A stretch of DNA of 18,222 nt from the sequence record NC_036595.1; one strand, written 5' to 3'. The notes below the pieces were generated by a model. That model had not been told where the DNA came from and did no database searches. It saw only the letters and a list, made by a program, of their open reading frames with translations. The translations under genes and the position numbers were made by a program. This document shows positions 1-18,077 of the stretch, piece after piece (within the stretch, counting starts at the first letter, position 1; every line of letters starts with the position of its first letter).

Positions 1-930
1 GTGAATAAGGCCGTGCTAGCTGTTCTAGCCCCCCTGCTGGCCCTGCTCCTAGCACTAGCCCCGGTAGCCTCGGCGGCTGGGCCGAGCGGTGTGGCGTACC
101 TGCCGCCCAGCGTCGCAATAGAGGGTGCAATCCAGCACAAGGCGCTAGAGGGCTACTCGATAAGCATACCCGCTAGTGACGGGACTACCGCCCAGGTTGT
201 GACCGTCGACCTCAGCCAGTACCTGCCTAGCGGGTTCGACGTTGACGGCGTTAGGCTGATAGTCGAGTCCACGGCGAGCGATAAGATAGTTGTCAAGGCG
301 CTGGATGCTAACAGTAACGTGCTCGCCCAGGCAGACGTGGTACCGCTGAGCTCCGGCTACGAGGTAACACTGCCCGCTGGCACTACACAGTTGCAGTTCG
401 AGAGCCTCTCCACCACAGTCTGGGAAGGCACTATAACGGTGATTGTGGAGTCTGCGATAGACATCGACCTAGTGTTCCAGAGCACGCAGATAACGTTGAC
501 TAACGGCTACGCCGAGGTGCCAGCCCAGGTAAAGGTGTACAACTCGCCCGCCGGGGAGCTGTTCCTGACCGACGATAGGCTAGACTTCGAGGTAAAGTTC
601 AAGGACACGAGCGACAACGACACAAGGGTAGAGATACAGGCGCACAACGACCCAGCCAACCCGGCAATCTACGACACCATAGTGGCTATATCCACCAGCG
701 CCGAGCCGGGCACATACACGATAAAAGTGACCATGTGGCTCTACAACAACGCGCTTAACGCCGAGTACGAGATAGACAGCTTCGACTTCACAGTCACCCT
801 CGAGGGAGATGGAAGCGGTACAGCGACTGTGAGTGAGCAGGCTGAGGAGTTAAGTCTAGACTGGGGCATGATAGGGCTGGGCGCCGTGGCTGCGGTAGTT
901 ATAGTGTTCCTGCTTGCTAGGGCGAGGTGA
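1..930 (+). CDS. Secreted/surface protein with signal peptide and C-terminal membrane anchor; candidate major virion envelope/spike protein
   Basis: N-terminal MNK + hydrophobic stretch + ASA-A cleavage-like site, beta-rich acidic body, C-terminal TM (WGMIGLGAVAAVVIVFLLARAR). First gene of the operon, and its stop overlaps the next start (GTGA). Confidence 0.75.
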   Translation: MNKAVLAVLAPLLALLLALAPVASAAGPSGVAYLPPSVAIEGAIQHKALEGYSISIPASDGTTAQVVTVDLSQYLPSGFDVDGVRLIVESTASDKIVVKALDANSNVLAQADVVPLSSGYEVTLPAGTTQLQFESLSTTVWEGTITVIVESAIDIDLVFQSTQITLTNGYAEVPAQVKVYNSPAGELFLTDDRLDFEVKFKDTSDNDTRVEIQAHNDPANPAIYDTIVAISTSAEPGTYTIKVTMWLYNNALNAEYEIDSFDFTVTLEGDGSGTATVSEQAEELSLDWGMIGLGAVAAVVIVFLLARAR

Positions 931-1121
931 TGGCCATGCTCCCCGTCTTAATCCTGCTCGGTATAGCTGTGCTGGCAGTAGCGCTCGGGTTCATAGACAT
1001 ACAGGCAACATTCGGCGACATTGACTGGAAGATGGTTGGCCTAGGCGCCGCCGCTGGCTTCGCCGCCCTGCTACTCATGAAACCCGGATTGGTCAAAAAG
1101 GCTGTGAACCGCATAAGATAA
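927..1121 (+). CDS. Small protein with two hydrophobic helices; candidate matrix or spindle-type capsid protein
   Basis: 64 aa, two TM segments and a basic C-tail (KKAVNRIR). Coupled to the upstream gene and followed by a T-tract. The structural role is inference. Confidence 0.65.
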   Translation: MMAMLPVLILLGIAVLAVALGFIDIQATFGDIDWKMVGLGAAAGFAALLLMKPGLVKKAVNRIR

Positions 1122-1140
1122 CCCCCTCTTTTTTCTCCCT
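1122..1140 (+). terminator. Oligo-T archaeal terminator after the first two genes
   Basis: CCCCCTCTTTTTTCTCCCT directly after the 1121 stop. Confidence 0.6.
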
Positions 1141-1208
1141 CGCGGGCCTCTCCCGCCTACACCCAGGGCGCCTAGGGCTGGGCCTGGGGGGCATGGGGGG
1201 CGGCCCCT

Positions 1209-1928
1209 ATGCCTCGACGCTTACATGTGTTGTTACTAGTTGCTATACTGGCTAGTGTAGTGTTACCCAGCGTAGCCGTAGCCTCGGCGGAAGACCCCCT
1301 ACCGCTGGAGTGGGGCGACACCGGCAAGGAGCTACCACCAGGATATAGAGTTACTGCGTTGACGCACGGCATCGCCGTAGCCATCGGCGGGCTATCTGGG
1401 TTCGCGGACGCCGTCGCGTGCGTGGGCGACTACTGCTTCGGCCTGGTGGGAGACGACGGGATTATCCCAGTACATGTGAATCTGTTTATCGCTGGCGAGA
1501 CGAGGGAGATAGACACGCTCTGGCAGGGAATGGCTGAGTATGATGCGGATTGGGCCTTCACCCTGCACTGCCCCGGGGAGAGCATAGGTGGCCTAGAGCC
1601 AGGCCCCGAAGAGGCCGTCCTCGAGGTTGAGAGTAGCCAGTACGGCATTAAGAGGTACTACCTAGTCGACCTGAGCCAGGGCGTCTCGCCGGACCTGAAG
1701 TACTTCTACGAGTCCACGCCCGGCGTGACGAGCTGGGTCGAGTTCACAGACCCTGAGAAGGTGAAGGACTGTGGGGGCGACTATCAGGGCGAGCCGCCTA
1801 GCGGCGGCGAAGGTAACAGGCCCCAGGGCGGCGGGCTGCTAGACCTGAATATGACCGTTGATTTAACGTGGCTGGCTCTAGGCCTAGTTGCGGTTGGATT
1901 TCTACTGATACTTCTAAAGAGGTGGTAG
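1209..1928 (+). CDS. Surface protein with signal peptide and C-terminal TM anchor
   Basis: MPRR + hydrophobic signal, Cys pairs, Gly/Pro linker (PPSGGEGNRPQGGG), then TM and LKRW tail. Confidence 0.75.
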   Translation: MPRRLHVLLLVAILASVVLPSVAVASAEDPLPLEWGDTGKELPPGYRVTALTHGIAVAIGGLSGFADAVACVGDYCFGLVGDDGIIPVHVNLFIAGETREIDTLWQGMAEYDADWAFTLHCPGESIGGLEPGPEEAVLEVESSQYGIKRYYLVDLSQGVSPDLKYFYESTPGVTSWVEFTDPEKVKDCGGDYQGEPPSGGEGNRPQGGGLLDLNMTVDLTWLALGLVAVGFLLILLKRW

Positions 1929-1929
1929 C

Positions 1930-2718
1930 ATGCTGAGGCCAGGCGTTGTGGCACTCCTGTTTATAGCGGCTATTGCGATAACACTCGGTATACAACCCCT
2001 GCTGGAGAGGGGTGTGCTTGAGGAAGCCTATTCGCAGGTCTTCGTCATAGTTTGCGAGGGCACGCCGGAATACAGGGAGATGTCGGCGAGCAGTTATGGG
2101 ACTGGGTGGTGGGTCAACGATAGTGGCTACGCCGTGACGGCCTACCACGTGGTGGATACTTGCGACACTATAACAGGTGTTCGGGGTGCCTGGAGCTCAC
2201 AGTTGCAGCTCATCGCCTACAACCCGGAGCTAGACGTGGCCCTACTCAAAGCCGTAAACCCACCTGACTGGGCTGAGGGGTTGCCTCTAGGCTACTCGGC
2301 CAGTATAGGGGATAAGGTGTATATAGTAGGGTATCCGCTGCAGGTGGTAGCTGAGCTTGACGGCGACCTGGCTAGGGCGAGCACGGCGCCTAGGGTGGCC
2401 GAGGCGAGCATAGCCTGGATAAGCCCAGACAGGGCTGTTATGGAGCTTGAAGGTGAGACTGACAAAGGAAACTCTGGCGGCCCAGTAGTCAGCCTAGAGT
2501 CTGGCGGCGTCGTTGGAATCATAGTCTACGCTAGAGAGGGCGCCGTCAGCACCTCGATATATGCGCTGCGTATGGACGCCCTGGCGCCGTTCTTGGACTC
2601 ATACAATGTCGAGTATGAGGTGGCGGGCCGCCCCCCGCTCCTCTTGCTGGGCCTGGGGCTCCTAGGGGCCCTGGGCCTGGCTCTAGTACTTTCGCGGGGT
2701 GTTAGGCTTGGGGCGTAA
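1930..2718 (+). CDS. Trypsin-like (S1/HtrA-type catalytic domain, no PDZ) serine protease with N- and C-terminal TM segments
   Basis: Catalytic triad motifs in order: GTGWWV..VTAYHVV (His), ELDVALLK (Asp), KGNSGGPVV (Ser), followed by GGVVGII. Confidence 0.92.
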   Translation: MLRPGVVALLFIAAIAITLGIQPLLERGVLEEAYSQVFVIVCEGTPEYREMSASSYGTGWWVNDSGYAVTAYHVVDTCDTITGVRGAWSSQLQLIAYNPELDVALLKAVNPPDWAEGLPLGYSASIGDKVYIVGYPLQVVAELDGDLARASTAPRVAEASIAWISPDRAVMELEGETDKGNSGGPVVSLESGGVVGIIVYAREGAVSTSIYALRMDALAPFLDSYNVEYEVAGRPPLLLLGLGLLGALGLALVLSRGVRLGA

Positions 2719-2920
2719 GCCTAAGTCTGACCTGGGGGTTGCATGTCTTGAGGTTGAGGCCCGTAACAGGGCCGAGCTGGCCAGGCTAATGGCAGAATCC
2801 AGGCGGCTAGCGCAGAAACTGGCTGAAATCGAGGAGATACTCCACCAGCAGGCCCTAGACCTAGCCAGGCTGACCGTTAGGCTGGTAGAGCTGGAGTCGA
2901 GGGTGAGGGCCGATGGCTGA
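2699..2920 (+). CDS. Small coiled-coil protein (start uncertain; may begin at the internal ATG near 2789)
   Basis: Heptad-like Leu pattern (LAQKLAEIEEILHQQALDLARLTVRLVELESRV). Fills the gap between flanking genes, and its stop overlaps the 2913 start. Confidence 0.55.
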   Translation: MLGLGRKPKSDLGVACLEVEARNRAELARLMAESRRLAQKLAEIEEILHQQALDLARLTVRLVELESRVRADG

Positions 2921-3377
2921 AGTCGAGATACTGGGATACGTGTTCACACAGGAGCAGCTAGAGGCGTATGCCACGCTGGTGGCCATACTGGGTGGTGCCG
3001 CGGCGACCGGGTTGTTGCTGGGCGTTATGCTAGACCTGCTGGTGCCCCGCAGGCGTAAAGAGGGTGGCGGGGACGGGGAGAGGCCGGGCGTGGAGAAGCG
3101 TGAGAAGAGTGTTGAAGAGCCGAGAATACCTGGTGTAGAGACTGCAGTTGCAGTGCACGTTGCCAGGATGGTGAAGAGCATGCTAGAGTCTGGAGAGGTA
3201 AAGATTAAACTGGTGAGGGATGATTGTGAGGGGGAGATTGTCTTCGACCTGAACACAAACGAGTTCAGATGCATAGACGAAGAGGGCAGGCTGCGGGGCC
3301 TGGGGGAGCCAGAGGCTGAGGACAGCCTAGAGGAGCTGGTGCGCGGCGGGGGTGGCAGGCGTGGCAGGCGCGGCTGA
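2913..3377 (+). CDS. Hypothetical single-pass membrane protein
   Basis: TM segment ATLVAILGGAAATGLLLGVMLDLLV followed by a charged cytoplasmic domain; operon-coupled. Confidence 0.7.
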   Translation: MAEVEILGYVFTQEQLEAYATLVAILGGAAATGLLLGVMLDLLVPRRRKEGGGDGERPGVEKREKSVEEPRIPGVETAVAVHVARMVKSMLESGEVKIKLVRDDCEGEIVFDLNTNEFRCIDEEGRLRGLGEPEAEDSLEELVRGGGGRRGRRG

Positions 3378-4314
3378 GGCGCTGGCGGTCGTGCCGGTGG
3401 GGATACTGGCGGGGCTGGCGACCTTCGCGGTGTATATAAACCGGTATGTGGGCGACTGGGGCTGGCTGACTAGCTGGGGCGACAGGCTGGCGTTCCTGCT
3501 CTGGCCCAGGCCGCCTAGGAACGTTGTGAAACTAATCCACCCCGATGGCAGGATAGACCTGATTTACAATGTGGACGCTAGGGAGAGCAAGAACTCGGTG
3601 GTGTTTGAGACGCCCTTCGGGGTGGTGAAGGTACAGCCCCCCAGGCACCTAGTGTCAGGGTTGAACCTGTACGTGCCAGGCAGGCCCTCGCCGCTCCACT
3701 TCGTTGTTGGGGCGATGGCGGGGCTGCTGGTCGTCTACCTAGTGCTGTATTACGGCTGGCTCTTGATACTGGGCATGGGCGGGTTGAGCCTCGCGGCCTT
3801 CGCAGTGCTGGGTTACGCCTACATGTGGTATCAGGCGGCGATGACGCCTAACACTATATACTACCCGCTCATCGTGACTGCCGTGGCTTCGGGCTTCATC
3901 CAGGCCGTCCCCGCCCCGGGAGAGGCGATATCGCCTAAAGAGTTTCTCAGGATGTACAACCAGGGCGTCAAGATAGTTGTAGACAAAGAGGCGAAAGAGG
4001 CGCTCGAGGAAGTGGCCAACATGTTGGGCGTTAAGGACATAAGCACCGCCGCCGAGATACTGTCGAGCGCGAGCATGTACAGCACGCTGCGGAAGACGAT
4101 AACCTCGATGGCCGCGAGGGCCGCCTCTATAAGCGAGGTGCAGAAGTCGATAAGCGTCTACACGTTCGAGGAGCTTAGGCGGGTCACACTAGGCAGGATT
4201 CTAGCTTGGGGGGTGTTCTTTGTTATAGGTGTTCTGGTGGGGTGGGCCCTCTTCGGCGGCGGGGACGTGGTCATAATGCCAGCCTCTCAGGAGCTGGGGG
4301 TGGCTGGGCCGTGA
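3352..4314 (+). CDS. Polytopic membrane protein
   Basis: Several hydrophobic segments (N-terminal, two or three central, one C-terminal); overlaps both neighbours. Start may be 3352 or 3361. Confidence 0.75.
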   Translation: MAGVAGAAEALAVVPVGILAGLATFAVYINRYVGDWGWLTSWGDRLAFLLWPRPPRNVVKLIHPDGRIDLIYNVDARESKNSVVFETPFGVVKVQPPRHLVSGLNLYVPGRPSPLHFVVGAMAGLLVVYLVLYYGWLLILGMGGLSLAAFAVLGYAYMWYQAAMTPNTIYYPLIVTAVASGFIQAVPAPGEAISPKEFLRMYNQGVKIVVDKEAKEALEEVANMLGVKDISTAAEILSSASMYSTLRKTITSMAARAASISEVQKSISVYTFEELRRVTLGRILAWGVFFVIGVLVGWALFGGGDVVIMPASQELGVAGP

Positions 4315-5393
4315 GGTGGGTTATATTTGTGTTTATAATGCTGGGTCTACTAGCCCAGCCCGTTGCTGGGCTGTCGATCAATTATGTGTTGTACAGTGCA
4401 GACTTCCAAGTGCCAGAGTCGGCTGTCGAGGCGCAGCAAGACGGGAGCGCCGTGCTGGAGCTTCAGTTCTATTTCCCCTGGGACTTTGACTCCGGGTTGT
4501 GGAAGAATAGGGTTAGTGTGGGTGGCTGGGATGGCATCGACGTTGAGAGGCGGTGGATAATAGGTAGCAACGATGTGTTGCTGGCTGTAAGGGCGTGGGG
4601 TTATGTGGATGGTAGTCACGGGGATCTGCTGACGTGTAACGGTGATGTTAGGAGTGCGGACTACACTACAGACCCGGATATAGGGGTGGAGTGCTATGTG
4701 AGCTACAGGCACCCTCTTAGCCAGGCTGGAGACGCTATATACCATATTATGATAGTTGTTACGCCATACGATGCTAGGTATTACCAGGTCGAGTACTACT
4801 TTGAAGGCCAGCTTATAGCCAAGTTCCTGAGGAGCCAGTACACGTACAACAATACAGAAGCCTGGCTGCTCAACACGTTTGACGATATAACAATGCGCAA
4901 TGCACTAGCCACTATAGGCCCGCCTATACCACTCTCGGGCGAGGCCAGGCTGGAGTGGAGTACAGCTATACCAGTCCCTGCTAAGACTGGCTACGAATAT
5001 AGGGTTACCGGCGGCGAGGTAGTAGAGGTTAGAGAGGGGCCGGGCGGGTACCAGCTAATGTATATACAGCCTAGTTTAACGGAGACTGCGAGCCCCTGGC
5101 GGGAATCATGCTATCCATACACGGTGACGCACGAGGGCTACGTGGGCGACACATGGACCACGCTAACCTGGACTAGGATGGAGTGTGAGACGATATACAC
5201 GACAATCTACACTGGGGAGATAATCCTCGAGGCTTACGAGCCCGGCAGTAACAGCCTCGAGGCTGTGCTGAGGCTGAACTTGCTACCCCAGGACGGCGCC
5301 GAGGGCGGTGGCAACAGGACACTAGCTCTAGTGGGGCTGGGGCTTATCGTTGCGGCGGTTGTAATGTTACTGCTTAGGGGTGGCAGGCGGTGA
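4311..5393 (+). CDS. Surface protein with signal peptide and C-terminal TM; possible ConA/LamG-like lectin domain
   Basis: Start reassigned from 4206 to GTG 4311 (GTGA overlap with the upstream stop), which gives a clean signal peptide MRWVIFVFIMLGLLAQPVAG. C-terminus EGGGNRT + TM + RGGRR. Confidence 0.75.
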   Translation: MRWVIFVFIMLGLLAQPVAGLSINYVLYSADFQVPESAVEAQQDGSAVLELQFYFPWDFDSGLWKNRVSVGGWDGIDVERRWIIGSNDVLLAVRAWGYVDGSHGDLLTCNGDVRSADYTTDPDIGVECYVSYRHPLSQAGDAIYHIMIVVTPYDARYYQVEYYFEGQLIAKFLRSQYTYNNTEAWLLNTFDDITMRNALATIGPPIPLSGEARLEWSTAIPVPAKTGYEYRVTGGEVVEVREGPGGYQLMYIQPSLTETASPWRESCYPYTVTHEGYVGDTWTTLTWTRMECETIYTTIYTGEIILEAYEPGSNSLEAVLRLNLLPQDGAEGGGNRTLALVGLGLIVAAVVMLLLRGGRR

Positions 5394-5584
5394 GGCATGG
5401 TGGCATACTCATTATCTTACTTATAGCTGCTGTGGTTGGGGCGAACCTGTATGTACAATTGAGCTGGGACTATGCAGATGCCCCGCCAGACGTAAAGCAA
5501 GCGCTACTGATAGGTGGCCTGGGGATGCTGGGGCTCGCCCTGCTGGGCTTCCCCCTATTGTTGAGGCGGGGCGGCAGGGTCTAG
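5390..5584 (+). CDS. Small two-TM protein
   Basis: 64 aa, two hydrophobic helices, RRGGRV tail, GTGA-coupled to the upstream gene. Confidence 0.7.
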   Translation: MRHGGILIILLIAAVVGANLYVQLSWDYADAPPDVKQALLIGGLGMLGLALLGFPLLLRRGGRV

Positions 5585-5592
5585 GCGGGGGC

Positions 5593-5661
5593 GGTACCAT
5601 TGTGGTACCAGTATGGTACTGGCCAGGGGGGACCTGGTACCAGGTGGTACCTGGCGGTACT
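5593..5661. repeat. Six GGTAC(C) copies with about 10.5-bp periodicity and nested palindromes
   Basis: GGTAC at 5593, 5604, 5615, 5636, 5646, 5656; perfect 14-bp palindrome ACCTGGTACCAGGT at 5632-5645. Confidence 0.85.
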
Positions 5662-5932
5662 GCCACTGGCGGTGTTGCTGGACGCCACAACAACAACGAT
5701 AGGCCTGTGGCTGGGCCTGGCTGAGAATGGGCCCCTGGCTTCCATGCTTCTCCCGGTCCTGGGCCCCCTGTACTGGCTGCTGGAGCTCACAGTAATACTC
5801 ATATTATACAATGTAATAAGGAGATACGCCAGACTGCCTAGCGACTGGGCCATGTTGGTCTCGGTTATTGGGCCCTGGACCGCCGGCTGGGCCAACCTCG
5901 CAATGGTAGCTAGGGTGGTGCTGGGTGGTTGA
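5600..5932 (+). CDS. Membrane protein resembling the DUF5658-type small archaeal membrane family
   Basis: Motif LLDATTTTIGLWLGLAENGPL (D-x-x-TT...G...E-N-x-P-L) with three hydrophobic helices; TTG start after GGCGGGGG. The family call is from memory of the motif. Confidence 0.6.
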   Translation: MWYQYGTGQGGPGTRWYLAVLPLAVLLDATTTTIGLWLGLAENGPLASMLLPVLGPLYWLLELTVILILYNVIRRYARLPSDWAMLVSVIGPWTAGWANLAMVARVVLGG

Positions 5933-6284
5933 CTATCCGGGCTGGCTCTACCCCGCCGCCTGGCTGGCTGCAATACTCGCCTCAGCCCTAATCCTGGCAC
6001 TGGTGTACTGGAAGACTGAGAGTATTAGAACAGGGCTGATAGTCTCACTGCTCTGGATGAAGGCCGCCGCCCTGGTGCTCTGGCTTGTGGGGCTGGATAG
6101 GCCAGTCGTCAAACTCCTGTTTATAAGGAGTGGGGATATAGCCTGGGGCCTCACGCTGACGGCGAACATGCTTGTGGTTGTGGCCCTCGCGGTGACAAAC
6201 CTTACCATCTACGCCTGGCCCGAGCTCTCCCGCGAGCTCCTGGGCAGGCGCGAGGGGCTCCCGGGCGTCCTAGGGCGGGGCTAG
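5925..6284 (+). CDS. Polytopic membrane protein, last gene of the + strand structural operon
   Basis: Three hydrophobic segments; overlaps the previous gene; followed by a T-tract and an AT-rich intergenic region. Confidence 0.7.
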   Translation: MVDYPGWLYPAAWLAAILASALILALVYWKTESIRTGLIVSLLWMKAAALVLWLVGLDRPVVKLLFIRSGDIAWGLTLTANMLVVVALAVTNLTIYAWPELSRELLGRREGLPGVLGRG

Positions 6285-9360: not shown

Positions 9361-9400
9361 AAAGGTTTATTAGGACTGGGGGCCTATATGGATATATGGC
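9361..9400 (+). promoter_or_regulatory. BRE/TATA promoter sharing the core of the repeated promoter
   Basis: AAAGGTTTATTA is identical to 7723-7734; ATGGC lies 30 nt after the TTTATTA start, as RTGGC does in copies 1-3. Confidence 0.65.
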
Positions 9401-9654
9401 TCTGTGAGCGTGGGAGCATGGGCAGGATTCCCGTGAGGCCTGTACTCGAGGAGTCTTTTTGGAAGTGGGCTAAGAAAAAAGCCATCGACATAGATGCGGA
9501 CGCAAGCGACATAGTGGAGCTAGGTCTAGCCATGGTTTATGTGGTGACTGAGAGGCTTAGGCGGGTGCCGCCTGAGCTCGGCAGAGAGTTGAGGACGTTG
9601 GACCCGAAGTACGCGGAGCTCGTTAGCAAGCTCATAACAGAGGCCAGGGGGTGA
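9388..9654 (+). CDS. Probable ribbon-helix-helix DNA-binding protein (possible start 9418)
   Basis: RIPVRPVLEESFWKWAKKKAIDIDADASDIVELGL fits an RHH strand-helix-helix. Confidence 0.6.
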   Translation: MDIWLCERGSMGRIPVRPVLEESFWKWAKKKAIDIDADASDIVELGLAMVYVVTERLRRVPPELGRELRTLDPKYAELVSKLITEARG

Positions 9655-9995
9655 TTAGGGTGGCCGGTGCTAGGATGGTTGCAGACGCCATAGTGCTCCT
9701 AGACCACTATATAGAGGTTCTTCTAGAGATTGAGAAGAGGCTCTGCCCAGGGACGGACGCCTGCTTCTCCCGCTACTCATCCATCCTTGCTATGGATAGA
9801 GAGAAGCGGACTGAGGCCGCCGAGAAAATTAGAGAGGCTAGAAACATCCTAGAAGAGGCCAAGCTAGCCCTGGCGAGGGAGCTCAAGCGCGAGGTTCTAA
9901 GAGAGCTGGCCGAGGAGAGGGCCCAGCAGTTAGTAGAGGCCGAGAGGCAGAGGCTGGACGGCGACGGGAAGCTTAAGCTAGCAGTAGAGGGGTGA
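9651..9995 (+). CDS. Helical/coiled-coil hypothetical protein
   Basis: E/K/R/L/A-rich heptads; GTGA-coupled. Confidence 0.7.
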   Translation: MIRVAGARMVADAIVLLDHYIEVLLEIEKRLCPGTDACFSRYSSILAMDREKRTEAAEKIREARNILEEAKLALARELKREVLRELAEERAQQLVEAERQRLDGDGKLKLAVEG

Positions 9996-10002
9996 GGTAG
10001 CG

Positions 10003-10347
10003 ATGTGTAGGCCTAGGGTTGATCTCGACGAGTTCACGCTCGACAGCATGCGCGGCATGACGGTGCTTCTCGACAGGTCGAAGACTAAGGCCATTGTCCA
10101 CGAGTCGGATGTGTACGACCATGTGAACGAGAAGGGATACGAGATGAGGTCGAGGTTTAAGATGCGGGTTGTTGATGGAAGACGGCTGATATGCCTCGAC
10201 GACGACAGGACGTGCTTCGACATGGCAACTCTCGACAAGTTCTGCGTCAACTGGCTTGAAGTCTACACAAAGCCAGAGCAGCCGCTGCTTGCTAGGATAG
10301 TGGGCACGGACTGGTTCCTGATGCTGGCACCCGAGATCATGTCATAG
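10003..10347 (+). CDS. Hypothetical protein, possibly a single PCNA/sliding-clamp-like domain
   Basis: C-terminus FDMATLDKF..LEVYTKPEQPLLARIVGTDWFLMLAPE resembles the PCNA C-terminal pattern (Y/F-x-L-x-Y-L...V-x-L...D-x-P-L-x-L...F-x-L-A-P). Confidence 0.45.
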   Translation: MCRPRVDLDEFTLDSMRGMTVLLDRSKTKAIVHESDVYDHVNEKGYEMRSRFKMRVVDGRRLICLDDDRTCFDMATLDKFCVNWLEVYTKPEQPLLARIVGTDWFLMLAPEIMS

Positions 10348-11958: not shown

Positions 11959-12285
11959 GTGCCGGGGGTGGTAATTACGCCGCTAACGGCTAGGGAGTTC
12001 CTGCTAGGGCTACTCTGGCTGGGCCCTAGAACGCCCGAGGAAATCCGGCTCGCAGCCGAGGAGTACAGTAAACATAATGTCGTGCTGTACACGCCCCAGC
12101 GGATAAACAAGGCTATCGAGCACTTCCAGGCCGCAGGCCTGGCCAGGCTTGAGAACGGCAGGCTGGTGCTGGAGAGGGAGAGGCTGCACCCCAGCCTCAG
12201 GCAGGCGGCCAAGGTGCTGGCGCAGGCCATAGACGGGGGTGATGGAGATGGCCGAGGTCGTGATAGCGTACAGCCCCCACACTAG
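11959..12285 (+). CDS. Winged helix-turn-helix DNA-binding protein (PadR/ArsR-like)
   Basis: LLGLLWLGPRTPEEI...TPQRINKAIEHFQAAGLARLENGRLVL matches helix-turn-recognition helix, GL and beta wing. Confidence 0.75.
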   Translation: MPGVVITPLTAREFLLGLLWLGPRTPEEIRLAAEEYSKHNVVLYTPQRINKAIEHFQAAGLARLENGRLVLERERLHPSLRQAAKVLAQAIDGGDGDGRGRDSVQPPH

Positions 12286-12496
12286 GCGTAGGGCCGAGGC
12301 CCTCGCCTGGTTCTTCCAGAGGCTAGGCCTCAGGGTGGTGCTCAGAGAGGATGGCGGTGAGGGGGTCAGCGTCAAGTACGGTGGTGTCTGGTGGCTGGAC
12401 CCAGACGAGGCGATACGCCACATAGTCTCGCGGGGCTGGGGTAATTTCAATCCACGTTTAAAAACATCGGTTAATGGGGGTGGACGTCCTTTATGA
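12239..12496 (+). CDS. Small hypothetical protein, possible Cys-less glutaredoxin-like fold (likely start ATG 12248)
   Basis: beta-alpha-beta pattern (VVIAYSP..AEALAWFFQRLGLRVVLRE..VSVKYGG..DPDEAI); fold call is weak. Confidence 0.55.
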   Translation: MMEMAEVVIAYSPHTRRRAEALAWFFQRLGLRVVLREDGGEGVSVKYGGVWWLDPDEAIRHIVSRGWGNFNPRLKTSVNGGGRPL

Positions 12497-13512
12497 CCCG
12501 GGTTTCCCCAGCACGGGCTGGGGCAGGCGCCGTGGTGTTCTACAGGGTCAAGCGGGTCAAGGGCAGGTACTACCTTGTCAAGGAGTGGTGGGACCCGGGG
12601 TTGAAGAAGAAGATCACCAAGTCGATAGGCCCCTGTGAATGGCTAGAGGGCCTCAGCGAAGAATACAGGGAGAGGACGCGGGGTACTAGGGGCCCCGCCC
12701 CTAGAGTGGTGCCGCGGCCGGGATTTGAACCCGGGTCACGGGCTCGAAAGGCCCGCAGTAGGCGGGGCGCCCAGCCTACCGTTTCCCCAGGCAACGGGTC
12801 CACCGTGGAGCCCTACTACAGGCGGCTATGGGAAACCTGGTGCCTGGAGAGGGGCACAAGCCCCGAGACCTGTGCCAGGTACTCGGGCTACCTGCAAAAG
12901 CCCCTGGACCCAGGCAACCGCTGGAGCGCCAAGGCCTGGAAGCTCTACTACAAGTGGCGGTGCGAGCTGGGGGACCAGACGGCCTGCGAGGACTACAAGA
13001 GGGTGAAGGTGCCGCAGGCCGGGGCGGACAAGCGGGTGCCAAGCCTAGAGGCAATACTAGACAGTATAGAGAGGGCGGGCCCCTACCGCATAGTCTACAT
13101 TATCCTGCTAGAGTCTGGGCTCAGGCTGGTAGAGGCGGTGAAGCTTATCCGCGAGTACGATAGGCTGGAGTGCACCAGGCTGGACGGCTACACCCGCTGC
13201 CTGCTGGGCTACACGCGGGGGAAGAAGAGGGCGCTCTGGGGCTACCATATCACGCCTGTAGAGCCTATGGAAGACCTGACGGACAGAAGGGTGACAAGCT
13301 ACGCAGAGAAGTACAGGCTAACCCCGCCAAAGTACATTCGAAAGTTCGTGGCCACTAAGATGGCCGAGCTAGGCGTTCCCTTCGAGGTTATAGACTTCAT
13401 ACAGGGCAGGACGCCTAGAAGCGTGTTGCTCCAGCACTACGCCCAGCTACTGGGCGTGGCGGACAGGGAATACGCCAAGTATGCTAGGTGGCTCAGGGGG
13501 TGGATGGGGTGA
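12493..13512 (+). CDS. int: SSV-type tyrosine recombinase (integrase), intact form
   Basis: N-terminal YRVKRVKGRYYLVK domain; antisense-tRNA peptide VPRPGFEPGSRARKAR; catalytic motifs ESGLRLVEA (R), KKR, KYIRKF (K-x-x-R), FIQGR and QHYA (Y). Confidence 0.95.
   Translation: MTRVSPARAGAGAVVFYRVKRVKGRYYLVKEWWDPGLKKKITKSIGPCEWLEGLSEEYRERTRGTRGPAPRVVPRPGFEPGSRARKARSRRGAQPTVSPGNGSTVEPYYRRLWETWCLERGTSPETCARYSGYLQKPLDPGNRWSAKAWKLYYKWRCELGDQTACEDYKRVKVPQAGADKRVPSLEAILDSIERAGPYRIVYIILLESGLRLVEAVKLIREYDRLECTRLDGYTRCLLGYTRGKKRALWGYHITPVEPMEDLTDRRVTSYAEKYRLTPPKYIRKFVATKMAELGVPFEVIDFIQGRTPRSVLLQHYAQLLGVADREYAKYARWLRGWMG
12707..12757 (-). other. attP core: 3' half of tRNA-Glu(TTC) including CCA, embedded in the integrase gene (not a complete tRNA)
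   Basis: Reverse complement TGCGGGCCTTTCGAGCCCGTGACCCGGGTTCAAATCCCGGCCGCGGCACCA gives anticodon stem CGGGC/GCCCG, loop CT-TTC-GA, T-arm CCGGG-TTCAAAT-CCCGG, 3' acceptor strand and CCA. No D-arm or 5' acceptor strand is present. Confidence 0.93.
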
Positions 13513-14966: not shown

Positions 14967-15302
14967 CTATTCCACCTCTCCACCCTCTTCTATAGCGCCT
15001 GGCGGCTGGCTCATCTCCTTGAGGAAGTCCTCGTCAACAGGGATCCCCTCACGGCACACCACAGCCATTAGGAGCAGCATCTTCTCGCTGGGCGGTAGGC
15101 CCCGGGGGCTGTAGGCCCACCTCAGGCCCTGCCAGGCAAAATACCCCTGGAGCCTCTCCTCAACCTCACCACAATCCCTGGCGCCGACCAGCAGGCCCGC
15201 CAGCTCCGCCGTGACCTCGTCACCGAGTATGCGCCCGAGCCTCTCGACTAGCCTGTCTATACTCCTCTTCCCCAGCCTATAGCTCTGTATATCGAAACTC
15301 AC
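14967..15302 (-). CDS. Hypothetical protein (111 aa)
   Basis: GTG start with GGGGGGTGG upstream; operon context. Confidence 0.7.
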   Translation of the reverse strand: MSFDIQSYRLGKRSIDRLVERLGRILGDEVTAELAGLLVGARDCGEVEERLQGYFAWQGLRWAYSPRGLPPSEKMLLLMAVVCREGIPVDEDFLKEMSQPPGAIEEGGEVE

Positions 15303-15376: not shown

Positions 15377-16153
15377 CTAGAATCCTATGATATCGTCTAG
15401 GTGCTCCAGCTCATACCTGGCTACATCGTCTAGCTCCCTAGCGACCATCTTCTCCCACTCGCTGTCCTCATACATCCTACTGATGTACTTCCACCTCTCC
15501 AAGTCTTCCTTGGCTATCTCCTCTAGCGTCTTACCCAGGGCTTCCCTAACTAGCCCCTTGGCATAGTGGTAGCCTAGAGACCAGTCCACTAGCTCTTTCC
15601 AGTCGTATTGATACGGGTCTATACCCTTCTCCTTAGCTCTGTCGTGTATTGCCTTCGCTAGTGCTAGCGCCATTATATATGTCCAGACCCTATCCTTTCC
15701 CCTCTTGTAACGCTTGGGTATCCATCTCCAGATGTCCTCTGCTAGGCTCCTAACAGCGGGGCTCCTGGCCCAGGTCTGCCTAGCCCTCTTCAGGGCCTTA
15801 GCCAGGGCCTTGGCTGTTATGGCTTTTACAGCCTTAGACTCGACCTTCTTACCGGCTCCCAGCTTCTTGGTTACCTTCTTCGCCTGGCTCTTGCTGGCCT
15901 TACTAACCTCTCGCTTTAGCCTTCTAACAACCTTTATCACGTCGTGGGTGTGTCTCCAGGGGCCCCTGCCTACCTTCTTCCCCCTGCGCCTGTCCAGGTG
16001 TGGGGTGTGCTTCGATATGTGGCTCCTAGAGCGGGCGTAGTAATGGCCCGGGCCAGTCCACGCCTTCTCGCACGCCCTCTTACTGTACCCCCTCTCCTCG
16101 CACCACTTGAGCAGTTGTTTCTTCGTCTTGAAGAAGTAGAGCTTGGTTACCAC
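15377..16153 (-). CDS. Highly basic K/R-rich protein; candidate nucleoprotein
   Basis: Very K/R/A-rich first ~140 aa (histone H1-like KKVTKKLGAGKKVESKAVKA), acidic helical C-terminus; directly downstream of the VP2-like gene. Confidence 0.7.
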   Translation of the reverse strand: MVTKLYFFKTKKQLLKWCEERGYSKRACEKAWTGPGHYYARSRSHISKHTPHLDRRRGKKVGRGPWRHTHDVIKVVRRLKREVSKASKSQAKKVTKKLGAGKKVESKAVKAITAKALAKALKRARQTWARSPAVRSLAEDIWRWIPKRYKRGKDRVWTYIMALALAKAIHDRAKEKGIDPYQYDWKELVDWSLGYHYAKGLVREALGKTLEEIAKEDLERWKYISRMYEDSEWEKMVARELDDVARYELEHLDDIIGF

Positions 16154-16406: not shown

Positions 16407-17399
16407 TCACCGCCTCATAAGCATGAACAATATAGCCACTGCAACCAGGCCCAGTGGTACCAGCAGGCTGCGCAGGTTCAGCCCGCCGCCCTCTCCCGTG
16501 AGCGTTATCGTCTGGACCTCGGTAACCACCCTAGTCCCGCCTGGGCCTGTGGCTGTGTATGTTGTTGTTATCACGCTTGTGTATGTGTCCGTGTAGGTGT
16601 AGGTTGTCGTGGACGTCTCTGTCTCTGTTATCGTGAACGTTTCTGTCTGGACAGGTACAACAACAACTGCACTATCCGCCGTGGCCTGGCTAGTGAACTG
16701 GTAGTCGTTCACTAGGCCAGCTAGACCTAGGCTATAGCCCACCGAGACCGAGCCAGCACTAGGGCCCTGCCCGATGCTTGCTGCAGTACTAGCTACGCTA
16801 CAATTATATATTGTCTTTGTGGTTGTAGACGTGTAGTTTATCGTCACATCTGTGTGATTAACATACTCGAAATAGCCAGACCTGCTGCCGTCCCACGTGT
16901 GTGACCCCACACTCTCGTCCAGTAACACCGTCCCGTCTGGGAGCTTTATCACCACGTGGGTGGGATCCGAGTAACCACTACCACTATGGTTTATGCCTGT
17001 TAGGGTTAGTGTTATACTTGTTAGCGTATCGCTAGTGATGCTGAATGAGCCAGTCACCGTGTAACCACTCTGTGAAAAACTGGCTGCATCCACCCATTGC
17101 CCGAGCTCCTGGACATACGTCTCAAACTCTGTAACGCTACCCCCGAAACTGTTGGGAGTGAATTCTATAGTGAACTCGAAGACATAAAATGTTGCCGCGT
17201 TCCCAGTGCAGATTGAGCTTAGGTCGTTCGACGTTCCGACTTCAAGGTCAACAGCATACCCAAAAACATAGTCGAGAGAGGTCGGGGCTGTCGTGGGGGC
17301 TGAGACTGTAGTCTGGCCATACACCAGACCCGCAAACACCGAAACCACTAGCAATATAGCGGTAAAAATAAGGCTGTGTAAATTGTGAAATTTAGGCAT
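16407..17399 (-). CDS. Surface glycoprotein/adhesin-like protein with signal peptide, Thr-rich stalk and C-terminal TM
   Basis: Hydrophobic N-terminus; S/T-rich beta domain with four N-x-S/T sequons (NHS, NHT, NYT, NCS); TETFTITETETSTTT stalk; EGGG + TM + MRR. Confidence 0.8.
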   Translation of the reverse strand: MPKFHNLHSLIFTAILLVVSVFAGLVYGQTTVSAPTTAPTSLDYVFGYAVDLEVGTSNDLSSICTGNAATFYVFEFTIEFTPNSFGGSVTEFETYVQELGQWVDAASFSQSGYTVTGSFSITSDTLTSITLTLTGINHSGSGYSDPTHVVIKLPDGTVLLDESVGSHTWDGSRSGYFEYVNHTDVTINYTSTTTKTIYNCSVASTAASIGQGPSAGSVSVGYSLGLAGLVNDYQFTSQATADSAVVVVPVQTETFTITETETSTTTYTYTDTYTSVITTTYTATGPGGTRVVTEVQTITLTGEGGGLNLRSLLVPLGLVAVAILFMLMRR

Positions 17400-17420: not shown

Positions 17421-18077
17421 TTATGGCAAGGTTATCTTGTACACAACTGTTACAACATCGTTAGCGTTCACCGCAAACGCGTTGGCACCCAGATCATCAT
17501 ACAACATTAGAGCATCTTTAGTTGCATTACTTGAATTAATGCTTAGCCTGCTGTAAACGCCCACACCATATACTGTCCCGCTCTGTGTTGCAACTATGCT
17601 TGCCGACAATATGAACGATTTTGTAGAACTGTCAAACTGGAGCCCGCCTGTACCTACCTCTGCAAAATCATACGCCCCAGGAAGCAGATACATTGTGTAG
17701 TTGTACGTGTATGCACTATCATAGTTTATGAAAATATATGCTGGATAAAACGTCCCATCGATTCTATCGATTTTTGCTCCGGTGATATCAACCATATCTG
17801 GATAGATATTGTTAGTATCATAATATATCAAATCACCAGCGAGCAATGATGCAACAGCCACAACAAAGTTTTGCGTGGAAGGGTCGTCGGGGTCGTAGTG
17901 GATTAGCTCTCCGTTCTTGTATATGTATAGCTCGGCCTGGAGTGCCCGGGGGCCCTGCTGTAGCGTCACCTCTATGTCTTGTTGTGGGGCTAGGTGGTAG
18001 CCGCCTAGGAAGCCAGCTAGCAAGACTAGGGTAAGCATGGGTATGGCTAGGAGCCCGCGCCTGTCCATACGCGCCAC
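17421..18077 (-). CDS. N-terminally anchored protein with a tail-collar/adsorption-protein-like C-terminal beta domain
   Basis: N-terminal TM. The C-terminal GVGVY...ALMLYDDL...VNANDVVTVVYKITL pattern resembles phage tail-fibre/baseplate attachment domains (weak). Start GTG 18077 or ATG 18068. Confidence 0.65.
   Translation of the reverse strand: MARMDRRGLLAIPMLTLVLLAGFLGGYHLAPQQDIEVTLQQGPRALQAELYIYKNGELIHYDPDDPSTQNFVVAVASLLAGDLIYYDTNNIYPDMVDITGAKIDRIDGTFYPAYIFINYDSAYTYNYTMYLLPGAYDFAEVGTGGLQFDSSTKSFILSASIVATQSGTVYGVGVYSRLSINSSNATKDALMLYDDLGANAFAVNANDVVTVVYKITLP

Follow-up and report, generated by a model that had tools for sequence, protein, structure and literature searches.

A clamp-like viral mini-protein, not a proven half-size PCNA, encoded by gp18 of Aeropyrum globular virus 1

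The DNA window analysed here (the whole stretch, 18,222 bp) matches the complete genome of Aeropyrum globular virus 1 (AGV1; LC208019 / NC_036595) at 100% identity over its full length in a megablast search. According to this record the genome is circular and the host is Aeropyrum pernix. We followed up one gene in it, gp18 (C1186_gp18, YP_009449423), which is labelled as a hypothetical protein at 10003-10347 on the plus strand and consists of 114 codons from an ATG at 10003 to a TAG ending at 10347. This gene founds a small virus-specific family, which has six members as judged from sequence, and it serves as the signature gene for a small set of hyperthermophilic crenarchaeal viruses that resemble AGV1. 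The protein is predicted to form one compact domain that combines three beta-meanders with two short, non-basic helices, and sliding clamps are the only fold that tops its list of structural neighbours. The models thus give weak structural evidence for a clamp-like mini-protein, which is not a proven half PCNA. We put at about even odds (roughly 0.5) the reading that gp18 is a virus-specific, non-ring, protein-binding mini-domain belonging to the DNA-handling and regulatory block of the virus.

Searches of Pfam, PHROGs, NCBIfam and PDB sequences gave no match to gp18, and a word-index protein search returned only gp18 itself. Because the claim then depended on the absence of relatives, an exhaustive phmmer search was run. 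It found four relatives of 113-123 amino acids (E 4e-19 to 2e-8), to which a profile search contributed one more. The five relatives were all assembled from hot-environment metagenomes of a single project (ENA REYS20-1 samples), and NCBIfam and PHROGs contain nothing for any of the six family members. That five relatives exist at identities of 34-38%, with indels that keep the frame, indicates that gp18 is a real gene. Fourteen positions are invariant in the six-sequence alignment (M1, D7, F11, L22, S26, G45, C64, T70, C71, Y88, P94, A97, W104 and P110).

In an all-against-all comparison of AGV1 with the five contigs, gp18 is the sole protein common to all six. Two of the contigs are AGV1-like and represent the first relatives of a virus described as mostly unique in gene content. 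One of these (L002; ENA ERZ23495365 scaffold_3771, 16.5 kb) has in common with AGV1 a trypsin-like protease and three other genes, namely the gene preceding the protease and those at 17421-18068 and 16407-17399. The other (L003; ERZ23495249 scaffold_10773, 8.2 kb) shares the VirArc nuclease and a homologue of AGV1 14967-15302. Recognisable genes beside the gp18 homologues encode ribbon-helix-helix (RHH) proteins, a nuclease and an STIV_B116-like protein. The family profile found no copy of gp18 in 351 Thermoprotei genomes, where the single match is spurious and contains stop codons; thus no integrated copies were seen among the genomes searched. Pattern searches of IMG/VR viral contigs with gp18 and one family member gave no relative, and a search for related loci among genome contigs based on gp17, the gene upstream of gp18, returned nothing.

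AlphaFold2, applied to the six-sequence alignment, predicts gp18 with a predicted local distance difference test score (pLDDT) of 91.8 and a predicted template modelling (TM) score of 0.85, and all five models have a pLDDT of about 91. The model begins with a short helix (8-10), followed by strands 11-16, 19-24 and 29-33 and helix 34-44. A short strand (47-48) then precedes strands 53-57, 60-64 and 70-73 and helix 74-79, and the chain ends with strands 82-89, 95-99 and 104-108 and a short strand at 111-112. The predicted order is therefore bbb-a-(b)bbb-a-bbb(b), where b is a strand and a is a helix. The BFVD model of gp18 agrees with this model (TM 0.98), and that in the ESM Atlas is poor and of low confidence. 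An ESM Atlas feature search pointed to plant PB1-like clusters (0.90), a score that the tool itself rates as chance level. An origin of three bbb-alpha units by duplication was also discarded, as hhalign comparisons among the thirds of gp18 were no better than shuffles and no internal repeat was detected.

All but one of the six family members are slightly acidic overall. Across the family, the net charge ranges from -3 to 0 in helix A and from -3 to +3 in helix B, with no conserved Lys or Arg; the lack of conserved basic residues in the helices argues against a role in lining DNA. The invariant Cys64 and Cys71 are located at the ends of the predicted beta5/beta6 hairpin, where they are candidates for a stapling disulfide. 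Disulfide stapling fits hyperthermophilic crenarchaea and their viruses. The C-terminal hairpin carries four further invariant residues (P94, A97, W104 and P110). The features of the gene are as follows.

10003..10347, plus strand: gp18 coding sequence (open reading frame (ORF) and translation, annotation, five relatives, AlphaFold2 model with pLDDT 91.8).
9991..9998, plus strand: Shine-Dalgarno-like box GGTGAGGT, 5-12 nt before the gp18 ATG (direct sequence reading; putative ribosome-binding role).
10192..10215, plus strand: Cys64-Cys71 codons, C-L-D-D-D-R-T-C (invariant C64, T70 and C71; strands 60-64 and 70-73).
10282..10332, plus strand: C-terminal beta-hairpin, residues 94-110, PLLARIVGTDWFLMLAP (alignment, PCNA tails, structure alignment).

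A Foldseek search of the PDB gave nothing significant (best E 0.06, TM 0.30), and beta clamps and PCNAs dominate its list. In two exhaustive structure searches, clamps were the sole fold at the top, where they occupy the first 17 to 20 rows of 48,161 chains with two models. These alignments always cover parts of two consecutive clamp domains: residues 5-112 of the model lie on PCNA 18-255, and residues 9-112 lie on beta clamp 158-374. The human PCNA alignment ends at residue 112 of the model and residue 255 of PCNA, so that gp18 A109-P110 would fall on human PCNA A252-P253 if the last residues are ungapped. In clamps, strand D of the N-terminal domain is paired with the final strand of the C-terminal domain, and the pocket for the PCNA-interacting protein (PIP) box is located there. 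Gp18 may mimic this inter-domain shared sheet with its N- and C-terminal meanders, and its middle helix-meander would lie alongside. On the models, the clamp junction in which two domains share one beta-sheet is, weakly, the nearest known architecture. Globally, the predicted structures closest in shape are uncharacterised viral proteins in the ESM Atlas and BFVD (TM by query 0.46-0.61). Examples such as A0A8S5PCE0, A0A8S5NA78 and A0A8B0LND0 are all viral and unannotated and, at about 145-190 amino acids, longer than gp18; their sequence similarity to gp18 is undetectable, and both sides of the comparison are predictions.

The first-pass annotation had noted the size of the ORF, about that of one clamp domain, and a tail reading P-L-L-A-R...F-L-M-L-A-P, and proposed a half-size PCNA with a PCNA-like C-terminus. 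The ORF and its translation bear out the size, and gp18 does end PLLARI...WFLMLAP (C-terminus ...QPLLARIVGTDWFLMLAPEIMS). The literal likeness to the Aeropyrum PCNA ends (...GGGRLTFYVSPRIE, ...GGRITYLLAPSTA and ...GERMDLYIAPSL) also stands. Many crenarchaeal PCNAs read (E/D)KPLxLxF...G..xxYLLAP, versus (E/D)KPLLARIxGxxWYLLLAP in the gp18 family, and residues 94-110 of gp18 resemble the betaH2-betaI2 hairpin and LAP motif of PCNA. However, profile tests find this likeness statistically non-significant. We compared the family with 35 crenarchaeal PCNAs, comprising six from two Aeropyrum metagenome-assembled genomes (MAGs), each of which has three PCNA genes, and 29 from other Thermoprotei. The hhalign probability was 0.2%, and neither whole-length nor piecewise scores exceeded those of 100 column-shuffled controls. 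With a hidden Markov model (HMM) of the PCNA C-terminus the six family tails ranked 18th to 127th of 736, inside the background, and an N-terminal PCNA HMM gave nothing for the family. A regular expression built from the gp18 family tails matched 0 of 930 background ORFs, but it was composed post hoc. In a Pfam hmmscan of the six members at E<=10 no PCNA family appeared, and the weak matches to DNA_pol_alpha_N (E 0.026) and CttA_N were far short of cut-offs. The family profile also found no clamp among PDB sequences. The hhalign result, the HMM ranks and the post hoc expression thus decide PCNA homology neither way, and a match to PCNA_C did not materialise at a significant level.

The comparison of folds likewise leaves only part of the half-size PCNA proposal in place. 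The predicted architecture and the tail are clamp-like, and clamps are the top structural neighbours, albeit weakly. However, sequence homology to the sliding clamps (PCNA_N PF00705, PCNA_C PF02747, beta clamp, 9-1-1, T4 gp45 and UL44) is undetectable, and the structural match itself is weak. Whereas a clamp domain is built from a pair of beta-alpha-beta-beta-beta motifs with pseudo-twofold symmetry, gp18 is predicted to have three meanders and two helices without an internal repeat. The reading as a single clamp domain is rejected, since every clamp alignment covers parts of two consecutive domains rather than one. Clamps form closed six-domain rings of about 250 residues per PCNA subunit and line the DNA channel with basic helices. 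In contrast, gp18 has about 114 residues, its helices are short and non-basic, and its predicted model is a monomer. A DNA-encircling ring of gp18 is thus judged unlikely, given that the helices are non-basic.

A rival reading is that gp18 might be a reduced clamp module derived from PCNA, which would form its own ring, cap or poison the host PCNA1-2-3, or act as a decoy for PIP-box proteins. Clamps were the sole fold topping both exhaustive structure searches. The PCNA betaH-betaI hairpin, PL...(Y/F)xL(A/S)P, contributes to the pocket for partner peptides, and gp18 carries this motif literally, with (E/D)KPL...YLLAP common to its family and PCNAs. In human PCNA, P234 and A252-P253 are pocket residues; the invariant P94 and the A109-P110 pair of gp18 appear to take their place, with ...A109-P110-E-I112 set against ...A252-P253-K-I255 if the range ends are taken at face value. 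The host genus encodes three paralogues of PCNA, and gp18 is found among DNA-handling genes. A precedent for such a role is TIP, which we take to be a small PCNA inhibitor from a Thermococcus mobile element (PDB 5da7, 'monomeric PCNA bound to a small protein inhibitor') and thus a small archaeal mobile-element protein targeting the host clamp, as the decoy or cap reading would have it; the 5da7 row in our structure search is the PCNA chain, not TIP. A complex prediction of gp18 with the Swiss-Prot PCNA1/2/3_AERPE sequences scored 0.00, but ESMFold2 left gp18 itself unfolded (pLDDT < 50), so this result bears neither way on binding. We consider the PCNA-derived decoy or cap improbable. A miniaturised variant of it, which we hold to be just as doubtful, would have the family retain nothing of the clamp but the inter-domain junction and its partner-peptide pocket, the ring edges and DNA-lining helices being lost. 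AGV1-like viruses would then capture PIP-box proteins or cap a host PCNA subunit, and the host replisome might be redirected to a genome that lacks its own replication initiator.

It is possible, though less likely than not, that the clamp likeness is incidental, gp18 being a small, acidic alpha/beta protein with no relation to clamps that acts outside replication, for example in anti-defence or as a DNA mimic, or else as a virion or assembly factor. Against this, 17 to 20 clamp rows heading 48,161 chains with two models would be hard to obtain by accident. Moreover, gp18 sits in the regulatory and DNA-handling block of AGV1, outside the structural block at 1-6284 (major virion protein, protease), and ORF1 is reported as the sole major virion protein (bioRxiv 10.1101/2021.04.21.440749). 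That the ORF is non-functional, or the AlphaFold2 model hallucinated, is very improbable. The alignment is shallow (n=6 sequences), confidence in the ESM model is low and ESMFold2 did not fold gp18 in the complex prediction. However, the homologues at 34-38% identity with 14 invariant positions and in-frame indels, the Shine-Dalgarno-like box and tight packing of the operon, and the agreement of five AlphaFold2 models at about 91 all speak against an artefact.

The protein-binding mini-domain is the reading that we prefer. Gp18 would be a soluble, slightly acidic protein of 114 residues and one compact domain, too small for a clamp and with helices not basic enough for encircling DNA. Its most likely mode of action would be protein-protein contact, for which the C-terminal hairpin, conserved and hydrophobic, is a putative binding surface, and it may serve as an accessory factor of the viral block that includes the nuclease, RHH regulators and B116-like DNA binders. 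AGV1 and its relatives have no recognisable replication protein, and gp18 bears on the question of how small viruses of this crenarchaeal kind exploit the replisome of their host. As a conserved viral mini-protein with sliding clamps as its sole structural neighbours, it is a candidate for contact with the three-subunit host PCNA or its clients and, on weak structural evidence, a lead on how an archaeal virus without a Rep might touch the host replisome. Should such binding prove true, gp18 would represent a clamp mimic of a new kind; otherwise, it is still the best marker gene for the poorly sampled AGV1-like group and, as predicted, a compact thermostable fold without a close match among solved structures.

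The GGTGAGGT box overlaps the TGA stop of gp17 (9993-9995), which suggests operon-internal translation of gp18. Downstream, a type IV pilin gene (Pfam Pilin_N) starts 8 nt past the gp18 stop. This spacing and the overlap of box and stop place gp18 inside a tightly packed plus-strand operon. The only paper that we found naming the virus reports 34 ORFs, with database matches for 10 of the 34, and ORF18_111, which is common to AGV1 and APOV1 and corresponds to the gene upstream of gp18 (9660-9995) (bioRxiv 10.1101/2021.04.21.440749). Gp18 matches, by size, ORF19_114 of that paper, where it is undiscussed. Consistent with the paper, gp17 (9651-9995) matches phrog_30177 very strongly at 2e-63, as the APOV1-shared gene, and the nuclease at 10777-11352 matches PF12187 and phrog_9634 (4e-67), as the SSV2-shared gene.

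Several observations concern other parts of the genome and its relatives. The RefSeq gap between gp16 and gp17 contains an unannotated ORF of 88 amino acids (9388-9654, plus strand). It is probably a real gene because a relative exists on the L003 contig at 4685-4948 (40% identity over 40 residues, E 7e-7). On another contig (L004), the gp18 homologue is followed directly by a gene (592-996) for an STIV_B116-like protein (PF08960, E 1e-9), whose family is widespread among crenarchaeal viruses. Small viral ORFs at 11959-12285, 12248-12496 and 15377-16153 bear the RefSeq names 'acyl-coA dehydrogenase' (108 amino acids), 'GMP synthase' (82 amino acids) and 'putative Glutamyl-tRNAGlu reductase' (258 amino acids), which look like over-annotation. 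The annotated 'tRNA-Glu' at 12710-12785 on the minus strand lies inside the integrase gene (12493-13512); ARAGORN makes no tRNA call there, and the sequence resembles the 3' part of a tRNA only. An integrated copy of AGV1 was not found in the published work (bioRxiv 10.1101/2021.04.21.440749). A 41-nt stretch of this element (12711-12751) is matched exactly in 109 crenarchaeal genome contigs, two Aeropyrum MAGs among them, and this is how an SSV-type attachment site within an integrase gene would be expected to look.
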